64,000 bases of DNA from Chlorokybus atmophyticus (taxonomy: Eukaryota > Plantae > Mesostigma and Chlorokybus algae): positions 86,091-150,090 of the forward strand of contig RHPI01003009.1 of assembly GCA_009103225.1 (NCBI GenBank). The letters are read 5' to 3'. A program made the position numbers and the translations under genes. The first letter of the stretch is position 1, and every line of letters begins with the position of its first letter. Of this stretch, positions 45,409 to 62,500 are shown piece after piece. The notes beneath the pieces were generated by a model. That model did no database searches, was not told the DNA's origin, and saw only the letters and a program-made list of their open reading frames with translations.

Positions 45409-46952
45409 ATGTGTTGAAGTCTACTTCCCTGGCAAGATCTGTTGAGCACTGCAGTTGTACAGTGGATTGTGTGCTATCAGGCTGATCAATCAAAATATAA
45501 CCATTGTGTTTTGCATGTTTGTGTTTGGCGTGTCATTGGCGTCATGTGGTGTGCGTGTTGACTACAGACACTGCGGTGCAAGTTCTGCCATGCTGTGCGC
45601 AACCATGGCTACGTGCAGCTGCCTCTGGCCTGCCATAACAAGGTCATGCGAACGGTGGTCTGCATGGAGCAGCCAGGAGAGCCGGCATCGTTACCATGGC
45701 AGCTCCAGCTACCCCTTATAAGCAGCCCTCTATACCTGCTATGTTGTGTCGTGTGACATGCTGCTATGCATGTGTTGTGTTGCTGCTGTGCATGATAGCA
45801 CATAAGCATCAGCAAGCGCGTGTTTTGCTGACTATTTTGCAGACTGTGCCTAACTCCCAACGGCTCTACTCTTGCTACCTGCCCTACGATCCCCTGCAGC
45901 CAATTCACACGCCTCACCGGTCTTACAAGACAGCCAATGGACCACACATACACCCTGCAAGCCGCCAACTTCAGCAGCATTTGCACAGCACAGCAAGCAC
46001 TACTGCCCTGGTTGCACAGGTTTGCTTGCTGCTTCTTTACCACCCTGCTCTGCCTGCCTGCCTGCCCGCCCCTTGCATTACACTGAGCTACTTGCACATA
46101 GCTAAATGGTCCTTGTGAAGCCCCCGCTCAAATGCATTTGCTCACCCTGTTCTGCTCTTGGCTTGCTGTGTGTGCGCGTGCATGCACTTCGCATCTATTG
46201 GAAAGCCTATACCTATGTACGTGTGTAAATAAATCTCCACAACTATTCTCGCCATGCCATAAGTGCTGCGCATCCATTGTACATGCACAATGTCACTCAG
46301 CAGGCAGCATTCCTAAGCACATACCTTCATTCAACAAGCAGCACCACCGGGCATAGCCAACTACGTGCGTGTAATAGCTTAGGCAGAACAGTATCATACG
46401 CCTTTTGTACAGCTCAACGCTACGTCTACTACTAGCTACCCCACCATGTGCATGTAGCACGTCCACTCGTAAGTCAGTTCTCCCCCTTCCTCCGCGACAG
46501 CATTACCCACTGTGGCAGGTGGGTGCATACTGTTGCGACACGCACAACCCAGACATTGTAGAGCAACACATGCAAACAGGCAGTCATATTACAGGACCAC
46601 CAGTACAGTATCGGACCTGTACATTAGTAAGTGTGATACATGTTTTCTTGACAGTCGGTTGTACCACCATTAGTGGTGTTCATGCAGAGTGTTCAATATG
46701 CCAATCATTCAGCAAGTGCACCAGTTGCATACTACAACAGCGGTCATTACACGCGATACTGCACAAATTTTGCATCCACCACAAGACAATTGTACAGGCA
46801 GACATGTTGATGCAAGTCACTACTGATCTATGCAGGAGGGTGAGAACAGCGATGCTGGAGTCTAGACCAGGGTCTGCAAGCTAGCTTGCTTGGACAGGCA
46901 TCAGCCAGAGCGGAGTTGCGGTGACAAGCGGGTGGGAGCAGCAGTGTGGAGT

Positions 46953-47017
46953 GCCGCCACACATGTTCAGGAAGTCGCCAGACATACGCTTTCAGCGAGT
47001 TCCGTCATAGTGCTGCT
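46953..47017 (-). promoter_or_regulatory. SECIS element of SELENOW-like gene A
   Basis: Minus strand ATGA-CGGAACTCGC-TG-AAA-GCGTATGTCTG-GCGACTTCC-TGAA, about 160 nt after the stop: AUGA/GA core, ~10-bp helix II, apical AAA. Confidence 0.82.
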
Positions 47018-47170
47018 TTCGCCTGCGCCGTCGCTTTTGCACAAGTGATTAGCATTAGCTTGGGTGAGGGAATCACAAACCATGGAGCTTTAATCTGGCG
47101 CAATGGCAATGTTGTTGGAACATCAGCTTACCTTCACGACCACCGGCTGATGCCGGCAATGACATTAGCC

Positions 47171-48432
47171 CTACTGATTGGCTGCCTTTATATCAGGCTG
47201 CACCTCCAACAAGACGGCCTTTACAGCATCTTCAATGGCTTGCACCTTGTCATCCGTGTCCACCTGCCACAGACCAGCATAAGACAAAAGCAAACAAAAA
47301 CAAGCTGCCAGCTGAGGACTTGAAGCCCAATGTGAGTCGGCATATGGCTCAACAATCATCGCATCACCACTGACAAATCTTGACACCACAATGGCAAACA
47401 TGCAAGCCACTCACATAGCCTTGGCCGTTCTTCTTGGAGTGGAGCAGCAACCGTGTACCATCTTTCTTGACGACCTCGACCTCTGCAAGCAACAGCCAAG
47501 TGAGCTTGCAGCACAACGGCTAAGCTTATGCACAATGCTAAATTCCAAGTCAGCAACGGCACTGTCCAACTGGAAAAGCGCGCTTTGCTTCATGTGTTCC
47601 ATGCCCTTGAGCCATATGGCACGCATTTATGAGTGCAAAATGAGTGTCTGCTTGAGTCATCTACTCGACTGAAATACACTCTGCACTCACCTAGCCAGCC
47701 GGTTCTGGTTTTTGTTGCCACTCCTGTCTGCAACACACACGCATACAGCTTCAGAACCGAAGCAGCTGGGCGGACGGCATTTACCAGGGAATGCGCAATC
47801 CACAGACACCCAGCCCTCTTACAATGTCGATTCGTCCAGGAAACCTTGCATTGAGGGCACACACAAGAGGACCAACAAGCTTCGCCATGCACATGATCAC
47901 ATGAACGTCAGCATCTGACTTGAACTCACCGCAGCCAATTGAGCGATTATGCCAATTACATGAAGAGCTTACCACGCTGAGTCTTCCTGGGAACCTTGCA
48001 TTGAGGGCACTCTCAATGTGTCGGTAGTGTGAAATGTACCCTGAATAGCAAGCAGATAGGCAAGCTCAGCAGCGTGATATGGTACCCGGCAGGAAGCCAA
48101 ACCAGCAAACAACTCAGACATGGCACAATACCTCATCCCCCGCTGTAGACAGAAGGCAGCCGGATGGAAGAAGCAGGGCACAGAGCAGCATTTAGCATAC
48201 AATGACAGACAGTCAAGTCAGCATAAGAGGCAGCAGCTAAAGATCAAAACAGCCACCCATGAGACATTGAGCAAGCAAGCAAGCAGCAAGCAACAACCAA
48301 GCAAGCCGATGGGCAAAGCAGAAGACCACTCGCCGCAGCCTACCAGTAAGTGACCTCAATCTTGAGGCGCTGGTCCGGCGGCAGCGGGACGGCCGGCGCG
48401 GGCAGGCCGGAAGGAGCTGAAGACTGAGCCAT
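47171..48432 (-). CDS. SELENOW: Selenoprotein W-like (Rdx family, CxxU), gene A, 121 aa
   Basis: Exons 48432-48344, 48142-48132, 48040-47973, 47727-47691, 47482-47415 and 47263-47171 give ...KIEVTYCGGUGYISHYRHIESALNARFPGRL...WLEVEVVKKDGTRLLLHSKKNGQGYVDTDDKVQAIEDAVKA... In-frame TGA at 48133-48135. Confidence 0.92.
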
Positions 48433-50894
48433 GGATGCCTGAAAAGTTTCTCAACCCCTCTCCGGGCGTGCACCTCGCCGCCCTCCGGCCGCCGCAGTCG
48501 CTCAACGGGCTCTTGCTCAAGGCTGTAGCACCGCTGGCAGGCTGGTAGGCAGCGAGCGCTGCTGACTGACACATGGAATCTGCAGTACACGTGTATGATT
48601 ACTGCGGTACCGCTGCCGGTTTGATTCCTGATGATTATTATGAGGCCAATCAAATGGACAGTAGGTAGGCCTACCAGCTAATGCTTGCATAGATTTTGCA
48701 TTGCCACAAGCCTTTTGCTTGAGAATTGAACATGAGACCTGTTTGTATGTGAAGTCCAACATGTTCACATATCAAGGGATGATTATGGTTTATGACTAGT
48801 AACGTTCATAAACCCTACATTGATAAAAGCTCGTGATTTGTCACTAGCTGATTTCGGGTATGTTTTATTGCAACCATTGGTGAAGCTTTGCTTGTTGGAG
48901 TAAATGTTATGTTATTTTGTGGTTCGGTATAATATGCTTTGCTATGTTGTGTTTTTTGAGTGCGTATATCCTGCCGTGCACGCGTTATACAACAATTAGA
49001 GTCATACTATTACGCCGTGTTACGCTAGCTATTATTATACAAAATATGTAATAATGAGTCGTTATTACATACTATGCATACCCTATGTATTGTCACACAA
49101 CCGGGCAAGGGCAATAGCGAAGCTAGCTACTTAGGTTGTATACGCAGCCTGGTGGTGTAACAAGTTGTTGGCTGGCATGTGGGACCGTGCTTGTGCTTGC
49201 ATATGTCACAAAGCCGTGCAATGGTTAGTCACATGCACACCATTGCATGTATTCTACACAAAGTGATGATCACACAAACTTCATGTGCACTTGTGTAAAA
49301 GACCACAGATAGCAAGTGACATTTTGTGCGGAAGCACCTATTTGTGAGACATACCTTATGATATTGTTAAGCACATAATGTTCTACTCGTACTACACTGA
49401 TACCCACAAAAATCGTTTGTATCTATAGGTTAAATGACGACCAAATGCTAGTTTGAGGACATATAAGGGTCCAGGTAGGGGCAAAAGTGAGTGTACGTGC
49501 TTGAAAACTGCGAGGTGAAAAGTTGGATAATCATATGCAAGTAACAACTCCAAGTTTTTATGCTACCACAAACATGCTTATTTAGTTGCCCCGCGTGTTT
49601 CCGCACATTACCCCACAAATGAATGCCTGATAAAAATGCATGCTGCAGGGAAAGTTATCTATCCGCTATCTGCTAGGTCGGTTTTTAAGTGGTATATACA
49701 AGGCAACAAATATCAACATGACGGTTGTGCTCATGCAACATGTTCGTCGCCTGCCAACGGCCAATGATGACCTTATTTGATTGAATGTATTGCAAACCAT
49801 TGCAATACATTCAATCAAATTATCCAACATATAAACATGCCTTACAAAACCATTATGTTATAGTACATGCATTTCATATACACGTACATATGCATAAGAT
49901 GCATGTATTACGTGACTCATATGATCAATGGGATTGCGTGGCTTATATTGTAATGCATCTATCCACATGTTGGCATAGGTATGTATAGTGTGGCTGCTCA
50001 ACCATATACACGCATTGTGCCAAGTTGAATCGGCAAAGGGTCGTACATATCATGTGGTATGTAATCAATACATGTGCACATCATGTTGTACTCTACGAAT
50101 TATAAAATGGTGTTATACTTGAGACCAGAAGGTGGTGCACATGATGTCATGCTATGCCATGTGTTGAATGCATGCCATGATTGTGCTCAAGCATTAGGGG
50201 TGGCCCACTCATACCAAAGCCTTGGTATGCTATGCTGTGCACACACGCCCACACCATCACTACCCGCATCCATAGTGACGCAACATGCTCCACACAACCA
50301 CAGCCATAGCTGCTTGGCAAGCCCATAGCGTCGCCCCACCCTCAACCCCAAGATTACCTGGAGGGAAACGCCACTATCAGCAAGTTGCCATGCATGCGGG
50401 CAACTGCCAACTCCGGCCGGCCAAGCTTTTACATCTAAGTGACTACGCTATATGAAAACCTGTGACTGCAATGCTTTTTTAATGTGTGCTCATTGCTTCA
50501 ATATTTGCGAATCACAACATGTTGAACAATTACACGTGATTGATTACTAGACATGTCAGTTTACAACCACGTCAACATAGGACTAATAAAAGCATGCACA
50601 TGCAACATACATCTACACAATAGCTACAGTCTTTGCCTACAATGGCCTACTAGCAAACACGGCATCTGTTGCAGCAATGCACAAATGGCAATCTAGTTAC
50701 TCAAACAAGTTTGCGCATACGTGCCCGTGCTACACACTTGCACGTCGCACCACTAGGGTTTGATGCGGACTGCCATTGATCTACACAATGCAATCTGTCA
50801 ACAGGTTGAAGCGGTCTTCTTGTCACTTGAGGTACGCAATCTATATACAAAGACTACTAGCGAGCCTGCACGCCAGTAAGCAGCTATGTAGCAG

Positions 50895-50962
50895 TGCCGC
50901 CACACACTGGTCGGGCAATCACCAGACTTGCATCTTTCAGCGACTGCCGTCATGCTTGCTGC
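50895..50962 (-). promoter_or_regulatory. SECIS element (form 2) of SELENOW-like gene B
   Basis: Minus strand ATGA-CGGCAGTCGCTG-AAA-GAT-GCAA-GTC-TGGTGATTGCC-CGAC: long helix II with G-U pairs, AAA and a mini-stem with a GCAA loop. Core is shared with the SECIS of gene A. Confidence 0.88.
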
Positions 50963-51008
50963 TCCTATGCATGCACACACATCCATCTTCACAATATACT
51001 TGAAACCT

Positions 51009-52044
51009 CTATTCGCTTCCACCCGGTGGTGAAGCTGGTGGCTTGATATCACTCTGCTCCTGCAGCAGAGTGGCCTCCACTGCATCCAGCACTCGCTTAC
51101 TCTTTGTGCTTGTGTTGAACTGCAATGAAACATTCTCAGAACGGCTGCGTTAACGCACTTGCATAACCACATTGCCAATCAAACAAGACAAGCTCCCACT
51201 CACATAGCCTTCACCGTTCTTCTTTGAGAAAATCAACTCTCGCGTTCCATCCTTCTTGACTATTTCGACTTCTGCAGCAACATGTCTTACTTACAGACTT
51301 CCCCAACACATCAAAGTTATGTAAATTATGCAAGTCGTCAGTAGACAACTAGGAATGAGACTCTGGCAGTTGCAATGCTGTGCATGAAACCAAGCAAAGC
51401 ACGCCAAATAAACTGCAGAATGCAACACTCACCAAACAAGCTTGTTGTCTTCTGTGTCGGTGTTCCTACCTGAACAACATATGACAGCGCTGGTCAAAGG
51501 TTGCAATAGCAATACCGCATGCCTTCTGCAAAACAACTACCAACTTGGTAAATCATGTCACCAATCAACATCGTTTCATCATGCAGTGCAATACCACTTG
51601 CAGCCGCCCAGGAAACCTCGCATTGAGGGCACTCTCAATGCTTCGGTAGTGGGTGCCGTACACTCCTACACAACAGCAGTGGCTCTGTCAATGCTTGTAG
51701 ACACAACTGCATCTGACATAATCGGTTTGTGAATGGCATGAGTATCCTAGCCTACAGCACAAGAGACACAAGAAACTAAACTGGTACCTCATCCGCCGCT
51801 GCAGGACGAGCAGAAGGTTCAATCCGTGCGCCACATAAGCACAATGCGGCATCAGCAACATGACATGAGATTTGTTCAGGTCTTTCAAGAGCGAAGGTAA
51901 CAACCACACTTACCAGTAAGTAACTTCAATCCGTAGGCGCTCCTCTGGAAGCAAAGGGACAGCCGGTGGCGGGAAAGCGTCGGCAGCAGCGGCAGCTTGC
52001 CGCTGCGACGCCGCACCGCCGTCCGACCCACAGCAGTTGCCCAT
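51009..52044 (-). CDS. SELENOW: Selenoprotein W-like (CxxU), gene B, with N-terminal MGNCC acylation motif
   Basis: Exons 52044-51914, 51798-51788, 51665 or 51662-51595, 51469-51433, 51271-51204 and 51119-51009, with the same phases as gene A. ...RIEVTYCGGU(G)VYGTHYRSIESALNARFPGRL...FEVEIVKKDGTRELIFSKKNGEGY... TGA at 51789-51791. Confidence 0.9.
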
Positions 52045-52719
52045 GCTTGTGTATGCAGGTCACCTCCTCAGCAAGCCATGCCGCTCATGCTGCCCACACC
52101 GCCGCCCCAGGCAAGAGTCTCACCGCCAAGCAAGCTAATGCTGTACTACGCTGTACGACAACAGCACGACAACGTGCTGAAGGGACTTCCAACATGATGG
52201 CACATCTAGTTGTGGAAGTTGTCCTTGTCCAGCTTTGGCGGGAAATGCTTCCTGCTTCCCGCGTTGTATTTATCCGGCGGGGCGCGGTCGCCACGTCAGC
52301 CCGCAGGTCGTGCCCATCCGTTAGGCAGGACGTAACGCCTGCATGTTGGCCAAGCCTCACCCGGCAGCCGCTGCGCTGCGGACAAAGCGGCTGCACTGCA
52401 GCAGTAGCTGCTGCACAGCGGTGGCAAAGCACCTGCAGTATTCGGCTGCTTTGTTCAATTGATTGCTCCATTGCTCTGCTTGCTTGCCAACGGCGACGGT
52501 GGCGGTGGCGGTGGCGGTGGACGTTGTTGAGGAGGTTGTTGTGGTTACCGACAGGGTGTGCGTGAAGCTCGGTGTTTGCAGGGCTGGTTATCATAGGTTG
52601 TTCTGCTAAGTGGTTGGCTTTGTATTGGTGTTGTTCCGTGTGCGGTCGGTGGGTTGTTAAGGTGCACAAAGTGCGGGAAAGGGGAGTTGTTGTGTGCATA
52701 CCGTCGTGGTGCAGGGACA

Positions 52720-59557: not shown

Positions 59558-62500
59558 CGTGTAAACACTTTCGCTCTTGCTTATCTGCGTCAACGGAAGC
59601 TACAAATAGCTACCACATGCAATGGCATCGCATAGTGTCCAGCGCTTGCCATGAAACAGCAAGGACTTGACCGCAGACAGAGATGTGGACAGTGCCCGAC
59701 TGCGTGTGTGCATTTGCAAACAAGATGCCGATGCGCTTAGAATGCCAACATGACTCCAGCCAGGTATGCCCAGCGCATGTGTAGCTCACGCAATGTGCAT
59801 TGGCAAATAATTCTTTAGCAGCTTCTTGCACCCTCGGTTGCAATATGCGGGGTATATCATATTGACTACTTGCATGTGCAACTAAGAGATAGTGGCCGCT
59901 GGTAGGTGTGCAGCAGTTGGTTGGAGCAAAGGCTGTGTATGAGGCGACCATGTTTACTGCGCAATGGATGCGATATGATTGTGCCATAAGAGATTTGGAG
60001 CTAGAAACGTCCGGAGTAAGGTGTGTGGCTGTGCACTGCCCAGTGCAATTTACTTTCAGTGTGCTGAAGGTTGTTTTGCTTGTGTGCTCATTCACTACAG
60101 GTTCAACGTTACATCACATAACTGAGCGCGTTGACCTAGCCATGGCGTGTTGATGGCTTGGTAACAGGAAGGGCTGCACACTCGCAGTGCATACTGCCTA
60201 TACTGGAGTGTAAACTACCTCTGACATGTGTCTTGGACAAACAACACTCAGGAGGGTAAGCCATTAACTGTGCAGCAAGGTTGTGAGTTTGCTCATTACA
60301 CTTGTCTCAACTTTGACCATCTCGGCTGCCTTTGCGTATGTGTGCGCAGGCATGGCGGCCACCATGTCTGCAGGTTCTTGTCAGACACGGGTAATGGCTA
60401 ACTGCTGTTGTGGTAGATATGTGTCTATGTCCGGCACAGTAGCATTACTCCTTTTGTACCACCTGTGTCGAATAGTGTCAACTAACAATTGTGGACACTA
60501 GATAACATTCGGGCGCACATATGGTTATGCCATGTTGGCAGCTGTGACATGTTAAAAACATGGTGACTGCTTGTAATGAACCCTTTTAAGAACTAACTGG
60601 TTCTTTGCTGGCATGGGCATGCGCATGGTTTGGGAACATGGCTGATGCATGTTGAACAGGACAGCTTATAATAAAGGCTGGTAATGTGTCAACAACGCAT
60701 CATTTGCGGCCGGAAGGGCTTGGAACTATTTTAACTATTTTAAGCTTCATCATTTGTGCGGGNNNNNNNNNNNNNNNNNNNNNNNNNNNNNNNNNNNNNN
60801 NNNNNNNNNNNNNNNNNNNNNNNNNNNNNNNNNNNNNNNNNNNNNNNNNNNNNNNNNNNNNNNNNNNNNNNNNNNNNNNNNNNNNNNNNNNNNNNNNNNN
60901 NNNNNNNNNNNNNNNNNNNNNNNNNNNNNNNNNNNNNNNNNNNNNNNNNNNNNNNNNNNNNNNNNNNNNNNNNNNNNNNNNNNNNNNNNNNNNNNNNNNN
61001 NNNNNNNNNNNNNNNNNNNNNNNNNNNNNNNNNNNNNNNNNNNNNNNNNNNNNNNNNNNNNNNNNNNNNNNNNNNNNNNNNNNNNNNNNNNNNNNNNNNN
61101 NNNNNNNNNNNNNNNNNNNNNNNNNNNNNNNNNNNNNNNNNNNNNNNNNNNNNNNNNNNNNNNNNNNNNNNNNNNNNNNNNNNNNNNNNNNNNNNNNNNN
61201 NNNNNNNNNNNNNNNNNNNNNNNNNNNNNNNNNNNNNNNNNNNNNNNNNNNNNNNNNNNGGGGGAGGGGGGGCCTCCATCTAAATGAACACAGTAACACA
61301 GCTGTGGCATAACGACTTCATTTGTATCGACAAGACCTTTAAGCATACGTTTGTACATGGCATACCATGATCTATACCCATACATAAACTCAAGTGCGCA
61401 TGATGATTCAACCACAACCAACAAACATGCGATTTGTATTTAGTGTCACCATTGTTGCATTTTTGAAGGGTACGCAACTTTCAACATGTGATAATGTTAA
61501 TTCACTCAACATAGTTGTGTATATTCAGGCTGTTTGATATGTGTATAGTTGTTAAGCAAGAACAACTTGAATGCATGCGTGCACATGCGCAATCGAGCAT
61601 TAAAAAAACATTTTAAACAATTTTGAATTCAATTAAACATTAAAAGCAGCTTTTGATAGCATAAGATACGAAACTGGTTACACACAATAGTATAACCTCT
61701 CCATTGTAAACCGCCGACCAAGAGATCTTGCCTTGTAAGAGACATTTTTGAGGAAACATATCGTTACCAAATCTTCAAATCTCTTCCATCTAAGAGCAAG
61801 AAACCTCGCAATAGGAAACCTTAACAACATGGATTTTCTCTTACACGGAGGGTGCATTATAAAATTTATTAGTAAGTATGCTTTATGAGAATGATACTTT
61901 CCTGAACATGAGCAAGTGTTATACATATATTTGTGTCACAGCATTACATAGCATCACAAGCTGTAAAATGCGTGATGTGTTTGACGTAACCTCGATATAG
62001 ACTATGCTCTTACATCGAGGAAAGAGACCCTTGTTGTAAGAGACAAAGTGCAGGGAATAAACATGTCTTCTAGATCCATGTCATACTGCATACCATGCAC
62101 ACGCAACGTAACGGCACAAACAAATACACATGCAACTATTACGCTAATGAAAAATGGATCAAGAGGGGAGGCATGCAATTGCGAGATTAAAAAAACAGCA
62201 ATAGCTTAACATGTCCCTATCGCATAGAAGAAGAGAGGACATGAGGAGAGGGATTGGACTGCATTTGCTTATTGCGTATCCTCTGATAAGACATGCAATT
62301 ACCAAATGCAATTTAATGACAAGATTTTTGTGTTACAAATACGACCACATATATCCGTTTAACTATTCTTACAACAACCTGTAAGTTGGGTTATCCGTTT
62401 AACATATCATCTTACATTGCGGACAACGCCTGTTTGATCTGACAGCGTGACAGTTCCATTACACCACTTCACCACTAGCTTTCGTGTTGTGGGCTCCCAA

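Follow-up and report, generated by a model that had tools for sequence, protein, structure and literature searches.

The biochemical role of selenoprotein W (SelW) is still described as unknown. In mammals, SELENOW encodes a small thioredoxin-like protein in which the CxxU redox motif follows straight after the first beta strand (beta-1), about nine residues into the chain; the protein is cytosolic, the first exon of the gene extends to just short of CxxU, and the SECIS element of the 3' UTR occupies a separate exon. SELENOV is a duplicate of SelW that has diverged significantly in exon 1 only, where an N-terminal addition of 228-334 residues lies upstream of CxxU; the addition has no lipid signal, and the gene belongs to placental mammals and is expressed in testis only. 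Two adjacent SELENOW genes in Chlamydomonas reinhardtii have been interpreted as the outcome of duplication and divergence.

A further point of reference is the thioredoxin h family of land plants, small thiol oxidoreductases of the classical thioredoxin type. Among the Arabidopsis members, h1, h3, h4 and h5 are cytosolic, h7 and h8 are found on ER/Golgi membranes and h9 at the plasma membrane; N-terminal extensions are present in h2, h7, h8 and h9. For thioredoxin h2, a myristoylated Gly within the extension anchors the protein to the ER/Golgi, and a Gly-to-Ser change releases it to the cytosol.

Here we describe two candidate SelW-type genes of the early-branching streptophyte alga Chlorokybus atmophyticus, one of which (gene B) begins with a predicted dual-acylation signal. 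Both lie in the window, by which we mean the whole stretch of 64,000 nucleotides that was analysed (contig RHPI01003009.1); strain CCAC 0220, the source of the genome, is now named C. melkonianii (PMC8611356). Gene B is a six-exon gene on the minus strand with a spliced open reading frame (ORF) of 142 codons (142 aa), in which the single in-frame TGA is codon 47, within a CGGU motif. Exon 1 is exactly 52044-51914, with a GT donor at 51913 (Table 1); it opens with ATG GGC AAC TGC TGT GGG TCG and encodes, in order, MGNCCGSDGG, a Gly/Ala/Pro-rich stretch, AVPLLPEERLRIEVTY and the two leading bases of Cys44. Gene A, with 121 codons (121 aa), is found 3.6 kb further downstream; it is on the same strand, also carries CGGU and starts with MAQSS. 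An earlier note on this DNA had described the MGNCCGSDGG start of gene B, its Ala/Pro linker and the join to PAVPL.P..RL.IEVTY, and translation of the minus strand bears this out to the base; the MAQSS start that it gave for gene A likewise agrees with the translated exon 1.

Table 1. Features of the two SelW-type genes, by position in the window
Feature	Position	Strand	Basis
Gene B, minimum 5' UTR, with in-frame TGA (52062-52060) and upstream ORF MSGMAC-stop (52088-52068)	52045..52098	-	X1 contig end and sequence
Gene B, codons 1-7, MGNCCGS, predicted signal for N-myristoylation (Gly2) and S-acylation (Cys4, Cys5)	52024..52044	-	sequence and motif fit
Gene B, codons 8-27, Gly/Ala/Pro-rich linker DGGAASQRQAAAAADAFPPP	51964..52023	-	alignment; mostly without counterpart in gene A
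Gene B, codons 28-43 and TG of Cys44, AVPLLPEERLRIEVTY; common to gene A, precedes strand beta-1 and the CGGU centre	51914..51963	-	alignment
Gene B, 11-nt microexon CGGCGGATGAG, completing Cys44, then Gly, Gly, TGA (predicted Sec47)	51788..51798	-	transcript contigs
Gene B, exons 3-6: 51665-51595, 51469-51433, 51271-51204, 51119-51009 (stop TAG)	51009..51665	-	splice joints and model
Gene B, predicted SECIS element of the 3' UTR: AUGA, 10-bp helix, AAA, GA	50899..50962	-	Rfam SECIS_1 20.9 bits and fold
Gene A, comparator without acylation motif	46953..48497	-	gene model, transcript contigs
Gene A, exons	48432-48344, 48142-48132, 48040-47973, 47727-47691, 47482-47415, 47263-47171	-	model and splice joints
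Gene A, 3' UTR intron (98 nt), between stop codon and SECIS	47131-47034	-	
Gene A, predicted SECIS element	47016-46953	-	Rfam SECIS_1 22.7 bits and fold

The proteins of the two genes are identical at 72 of 121 residues, and the intron phases are the same throughout. As judged from exon lengths and phases, divergence is confined to exon 1, which measures 131 nt in gene B against 89 nt in gene A, while the remaining exons are equal or differ by 3-18 nt. Within exon 1 the two peptides share P.PAVPL.P..RL.IEVTY (16 of 29 aligned columns identical), and the alignment makes the N-terminus of gene B longer by about 14-21 residues. Given a dS of about 2, which is saturated (dN 0.31), the duplication behind the pair is on sequence divergence an old one rather than a recent one; transcript contigs place both paralogues in sibling Chlorokybus as well. 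In each gene the Sec codon sits on an 11-nt microexon that completes a Cys codon and continues with Gly, Gly, TGA and a single G, and this arrangement is likely to be one reason why gene predictors miss genes A and B.

Several smaller features accompany the pair. Gene B has no 3' UTR intron, an X2 contig being colinear with the genome across 50677-51119; in gene A such an intron places the SECIS element on a last exon of its own, the arrangement described for mammalian SELENOW and SELENOV. Intron 3 of gene A holds a partial copy of the 3' half of exon 3 (47822-47860, minus strand), which encodes ALNARFPGRIDI, has a GTAAGA donor and no acceptor, and is skipped in all transcript contigs. Between the two genes, at 49764-49826, lies a near-perfect AT-rich inverted repeat with several weak matches to microRNA families on both strands; it is probably a simple intergenic palindrome. 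Elsewhere in the window, the 2 kb at 60001-62000 have a GC content of 0.315, against about 0.5 for the rest; the latter value agrees with the 50.3% published for the assembly of strain CCAC 0220.

Assignment of the pair to the SelW type draws on both halves of the proteins and on the 3' UTRs. The redox motif follows the first beta strand as RIEVTY-CGGU-G in gene B and KIEVTY-CGGU-G in gene A. Exons 4-6 of gene B (residues 56-126 of the public protein model P0001, described below) find mouse selenoprotein W, 2NPB, as their best PDB match (E 2.5e-4), through SKK.G.GY..T; the same query aligns with positions 38-72 of Pfam Rdx (PF10262) at 14 bits, below the cut-off of 22.6, as would be expected of a query that spans half the domain. 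Family searches took exons 4-6 or single exons rather than the full-length spliced proteins, and the single exons, too short as queries, returned nothing from Pfam or PDB. Support for genes A and B as SelW-type selenoproteins can accordingly be called good but not complete.

The predicted SECIS elements occupy the same relative place in both genes and agree at about 80% of some 85 nt, although other UTR sequence does not align. Each folds into AUGA, a 10-bp helix, an AAA bulge with mini-stem and GA, with canonical motif spacing; the Rfam SECIS_1 scores of 20.9 bits (gene B) and 22.7 bits (gene A) lie below the gathering score of 35. The TGA of CGGU is present in the window and in contigs of all four transcript runs (X1, X2, X3 and X6). 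Insertion of selenocysteine at the UGA of both messages is predicted. Directly 3' of each SECIS element, at about 50885-50905 and 46935-46958 (minus strand), there is a second short hairpin (GUGUGGCGGCACU...), near-identical between the paralogues.

Transcript evidence consists of spliced contigs from these four public runs, of which X1, X2 and X3 hold gene B. All introns of both gene models are confirmed by the contigs, and gene B was assembled and spliced in three of the three runs that hold it; such contigs cannot rank expression, and for gene B they attest the presence of a spliced transcript, not its level. Nine to twelve letters, the microexon, lie between the flanking joints of gene B (51667/51914) in the X1, X2 and X3 contigs. 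Contigs from X1 and X2 match the window exactly, and those from X3 and X6 are diverged by about 5-10%. X3 and X6 probably represent sibling Chlorokybus species, because this divergence fits the published distances of 2.5-8.7% among cryptic species of the genus (PMC8611356). X1 also holds a low-depth gene B contig (50966-51592) with many X3-type differences, which suggests that the sample contains a second lineage or allele.

Gene B already has a public protein model. P0001 (jgi Chlat1 6810; jgi/Chlat1/6810/Chrsp51S06509; EukProt EP00898 Chlorokybus atmophyticus) is 126 aa long: residues 1-43 correspond to exon 1, the next 12 come from an exon placed in intron 2, and residues 56-126 correspond to exons 4-6. 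The MGNCC start is kept; the Sec microexon and exon 3 are replaced by a 34-nt exon at 51751-51718 (minus strand), giving WLGYSCHSQTDY. No transcript contig uses this alternative exon, which we reject, and a database look-up has no contig on record that encodes P0001. The annotated protein is thus a mis-spliced model, and it lacks the CGGU centre because the Sec microexon and exon 3 have been spliced out. For gene A, a word-index protein search gave no public protein model among the matches to P0001 and to P0001:56-126; these queries could have revealed one because several five-residue words are common to both proteins, and gene A appears to be without any public protein model. Since the model of gene B loses its Sec and gene A seems to be unmodelled, the published count of three selenoproteins for Chlorokybus may be too low.

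The start of gene B deserves particular attention. The ORF contains no Met codon other than the ATG at 52044. Extension to an earlier AUG is ruled out by a TGA that lies in frame five codons upstream, and for want of any further Met no downstream AUG could give a protein with the SelW domain; this ATG is thus the only possible AUG start of gene B, and it is well supported. The X1 contig reaches 52098, where Illumina adapter begins, and reports no splice joint between that point and the ATG, so that the 5' UTR is at least 54 nt long. Contig ends bounded by adapter set a lower bound rather than mapping a transcription start, because an X6 contig also has adapter after an end that lies inside the coding region of gene A. 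The ATG has A at -3 and G at +4, and P0001, an independent public model, uses the same one. The start codon named in the earlier note is upheld by the sole Met, the upstream TGA, the X1 cDNA and P0001 together.

It can also be envisioned that this ATG is little used, through capture of ribosomes by the upstream ORF (uORF) or failed read-through of the UGA, and that MGNCC has no biological consequence. Two upstream AUGs, at 52088 and 52079, fall within the minimum 5' UTR, the second in a strong context, and may reduce translation of gene B; the SECIS score below the Rfam threshold points the same way. However, the uORF MSGMAC-stop has six codons (three from the second AUG), and 23 nt separate it from the main AUG, a layout that favours re-initiation or leaky scanning; the observed cDNA begins 10 nt before the first upstream AUG. 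Gene B is moreover spliced and assembled in X1, X2 and X3. Despite saturation at silent sites, the two paralogues have retained the TGA, the exon structure and the SECIS core, a pattern that speaks for selection on the protein. We consider a little-used start very improbable; the uORF would be expected to modulate rather than block translation.

The signal itself can be compared with the published motif for N-myristoyltransferase (NMT), quoted from Castrec 2018 in PMC9018777 as M-G-[not DEFRWY]-X-[not DEKR]-[ACGST]-[KR], with the last basic residue non-obligatory. Gly2, Asn3, Cys5 and Gly6 of gene B fit this motif, and the N-terminus also matches a PROSITE-type regular expression. Position 7 is Ser rather than the preferred Lys/Arg, and Asp follows; according to PMC9018777, NMT also accepts substrates that have no positive charge at position 7. 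Cys4 and Cys5 fall within positions 3-6 beside Gly2, the Cys placement of dual-acylated N-termini, and could be available for S-acylation; they are the only cysteines of gene B outside CGGU, and gene A has none there. By a rough hand estimate, about five per million random N-termini would combine Gly2, Cys4 and Cys5 with permitted residues at positions 3 and 6, which is well under one expected per 10,000-gene proteome.

Related N-termini have been followed in cells. In cells of mouse, human and Drosophila, a heptapeptide that begins MGNC, fused to GFP, is located mainly at the plasma membrane, and a Ser6-to-Gly change in the G-alpha-o heptapeptide-GFP leaves membrane binding intact (PMC9018777). 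MGNCC N-termini recur in membrane-bound plant calcium-dependent protein kinases (CDPKs), and mutation of either the myristoylation or the palmitoylation site of CPK34 abolishes its plasma membrane localisation. Among the membrane-associated CDPKs, BnaCPK7 begins MGNCCGSP, identical to gene B over the first seven residues, BnaCPK32 begins MGNCCGTA and BnaCPK34 begins MGNCCGRD; the proteins are unrelated to SelW, the likeness is limited to the signal, and it is presumably convergent. Software has been less uniform on such sequences: in published canola data Myristoylator returned 'not detected' for the MGNCCGSP of BnaCPK7 and 'yes' for MGNCCGTA, and for several MGNCC N-termini of maize, in which the sixth residue is Pro, Arg or Val, the prediction was 'No'. 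Of the dual-acylation signal put forward in the earlier note, the fit to the published NMT motif and the two cysteines stand, while lipidation and membrane location are predictions.

The 'not detected' call on an identical heptapeptide, along with the missing Lys/Arg at position 7, leaves room for another use of the same residues. The tail could be disordered and un- or marginally lipidated, with Cys4-Cys5 acting in redox chemistry or metal binding, for example as a relay dithiol for CGGU, in a protein that stays soluble. These are the sole extra cysteines in a redox protein, and the long flexible linker could bring the pair to the active site. Yet Gly2 and the allowed residues at positions 3, 5 and 6 are required by NMT and not by a redox tail, and MG.CC is a recurrent signature of dual acylation in CDPKs and G-alpha subunits. 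No N-terminal relay dithiol is known to us from any SelW or Rdx protein, and we regard this soluble alternative as unlikely, though it carries the most weight of those considered here.

An organellar destination can be weighed from the composition of the extension. Ala-rich N-terminal extensions are common among green-lineage transit peptides, residues 11-23 of gene B are Ala-rich, and a plastid or mitochondrial targeting peptide would make the product an organellar SelW. The first 33 residues, however, have a net charge of -1, with one Arg as the sole basic residue and two acidic ones, and the first 35 contain one basic residue against three acidic. The extension exceeds that of gene A by about 21 residues and has no amphipathic or hydroxyl-rich character, and the PAVPL...RL.IEVTY that follows is common to gene A and therefore not part of a cleavable presequence. 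The transit-peptide reading was rejected on composition, and an organellar SelW is highly unlikely.

The reading that we favour is that the gene B protein is myristoylated, S-acylated and membrane-bound, which we hold to be fairly probable. The initiator Met would be removed and Gly2 N-myristoylated co-translationally; the weak membrane affinity conferred by the myristate would then allow DHHC-type acyltransferases to S-acylate Cys4 and/or Cys5, and this second step would hold the protein firmly to a membrane, either the plasma membrane or Golgi/endomembranes, on its cytosolic side. The redox domain, set off by a linker of about 26 residues that is flexible and rich in Gly/Ala/Pro, could then reach membrane-proximal targets. 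The product of gene A (MAQSS..., with neither Gly2 nor an extra Cys) would be the soluble counterpart. Anchoring to a cilium, which the earlier note had offered beside a general membrane location, is not supported: flagella are confined to zoospores and vegetative Chlorokybus cells are non-flagellate (PMC8611356), yet gene B contigs are present in X1, X2 and X3.

How widely the N-terminus is shared bears on its age. Relative to the window, the X3 linker (codons 8-27) lacks one codon and shows three amino-acid and three silent changes, in an exon 1 piece for which differences less than 30 nt from the piece ends are unlisted and 2 of 11 differences are unplaced; the comparison therefore does not extend to codons 1-9. 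Among the letters between the X3 joints near 51665, Cys44 is TGT (a silent change), and Glu takes the place of Gly directly after Sec47. In a word-index search of proteins, the exon 1 peptide, P0001 and P0001:56-126 had no homologue besides P0001; HMMER, run in full with the exon 1 peptide against 1.84 billion representatives, gave P0001 and one spurious low-complexity match. Such a blank is weak, given that a 43-residue query misses diverged orthologues and that a 46-codon ORF ending at UGA is absent from most predicted proteomes. Metagenome scans with the pattern PAVPL[LP]P[ED][EQ] matched 544 stretches, none of them confirmed, and with the pattern MG.CC...EVTYC four, all by chance (in-frame stops or no SelW sequence). 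Across these protein and metagenome searches, weak as they are for a 43-residue query, no orthologue with an MGNCC-type N-terminus was found, and no usable outgroup either; what the earlier note called a gain of the signal by gene B may instead be a loss from gene A.

It is conceivable, though we think it rather improbable, that gene B belongs to an old and conserved green-algal lineage of lipid-anchored SelW, possibly one of a tandem pair of the Chlamydomonas type. Such a lineage would place SelW redox function at the cytosolic face of membranes, and its product would be, to our knowledge, the first fatty-acylated selenoprotein. More generally, a pair made of a soluble and a predicted membrane-tethered SelW would give a handle on the site of SelW action.

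In comparison with known systems, genes A and B resemble mammalian SELENOW in size, in a putative thioredoxin-like character, in a CxxU placed straight after beta-1, in an exon 1 that ends just before it and in a predicted SECIS element in the 3' UTR; gene A shares the separate SECIS exon as well. They differ in carrying the Sec codon on its own microexon, and gene B has 43 residues before CxxU, beginning with the dual-acylation motif, in place of the short start of the cytosolic mammalian protein. The Chlamydomonas genes offer the same adjacent arrangement of two copies. Mammalian methionine sulfoxide reductase A, another redox enzyme (of repair), reportedly has an N-myristoylated form on late endosomes (Lim et al. 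2018, as cited in PMC7539508); it has a different fold, is a Cys form in mammals and carries myristoylation only.

SELENOV is the closest evolutionary analogue of gene B, analogous and not homologous. The comparison, which the earlier note had drawn, holds in that both are SelW duplicates whose divergence from the paralogue is confined to exon 1 and whose N-terminal additions lie upstream of CxxU; it does not extend to the scale or lineage, gene B having about 21 additional residues with a predicted lipidation signal, in a streptophyte alga, where SELENOV has more than 200 without one, in placental mammals.

In function the nearest parallel is the thioredoxin h family, in which small thiol oxidoreductases come as soluble and N-acylated paralogues; its members have WCGPC and the classical thioredoxin fold rather than Rdx, Cys rather than Sec, and occur in land plants rather than an early-branching streptophyte alga. 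Open-access full text yielded no literature linking SelW to myristoylation or reporting a lipid-anchored SelW, apart from coincidental co-mentions. The earlier note had thought a split into soluble and anchored forms undescribed; none has been reported for SelW, but the principle is known from the thioredoxins h, and the split would be new only in its occurrence in SelW. The Chlorokybus pair would carry the division between soluble and N-acylated paralogues from the thioredoxins h to the Rdx selenoproteins.
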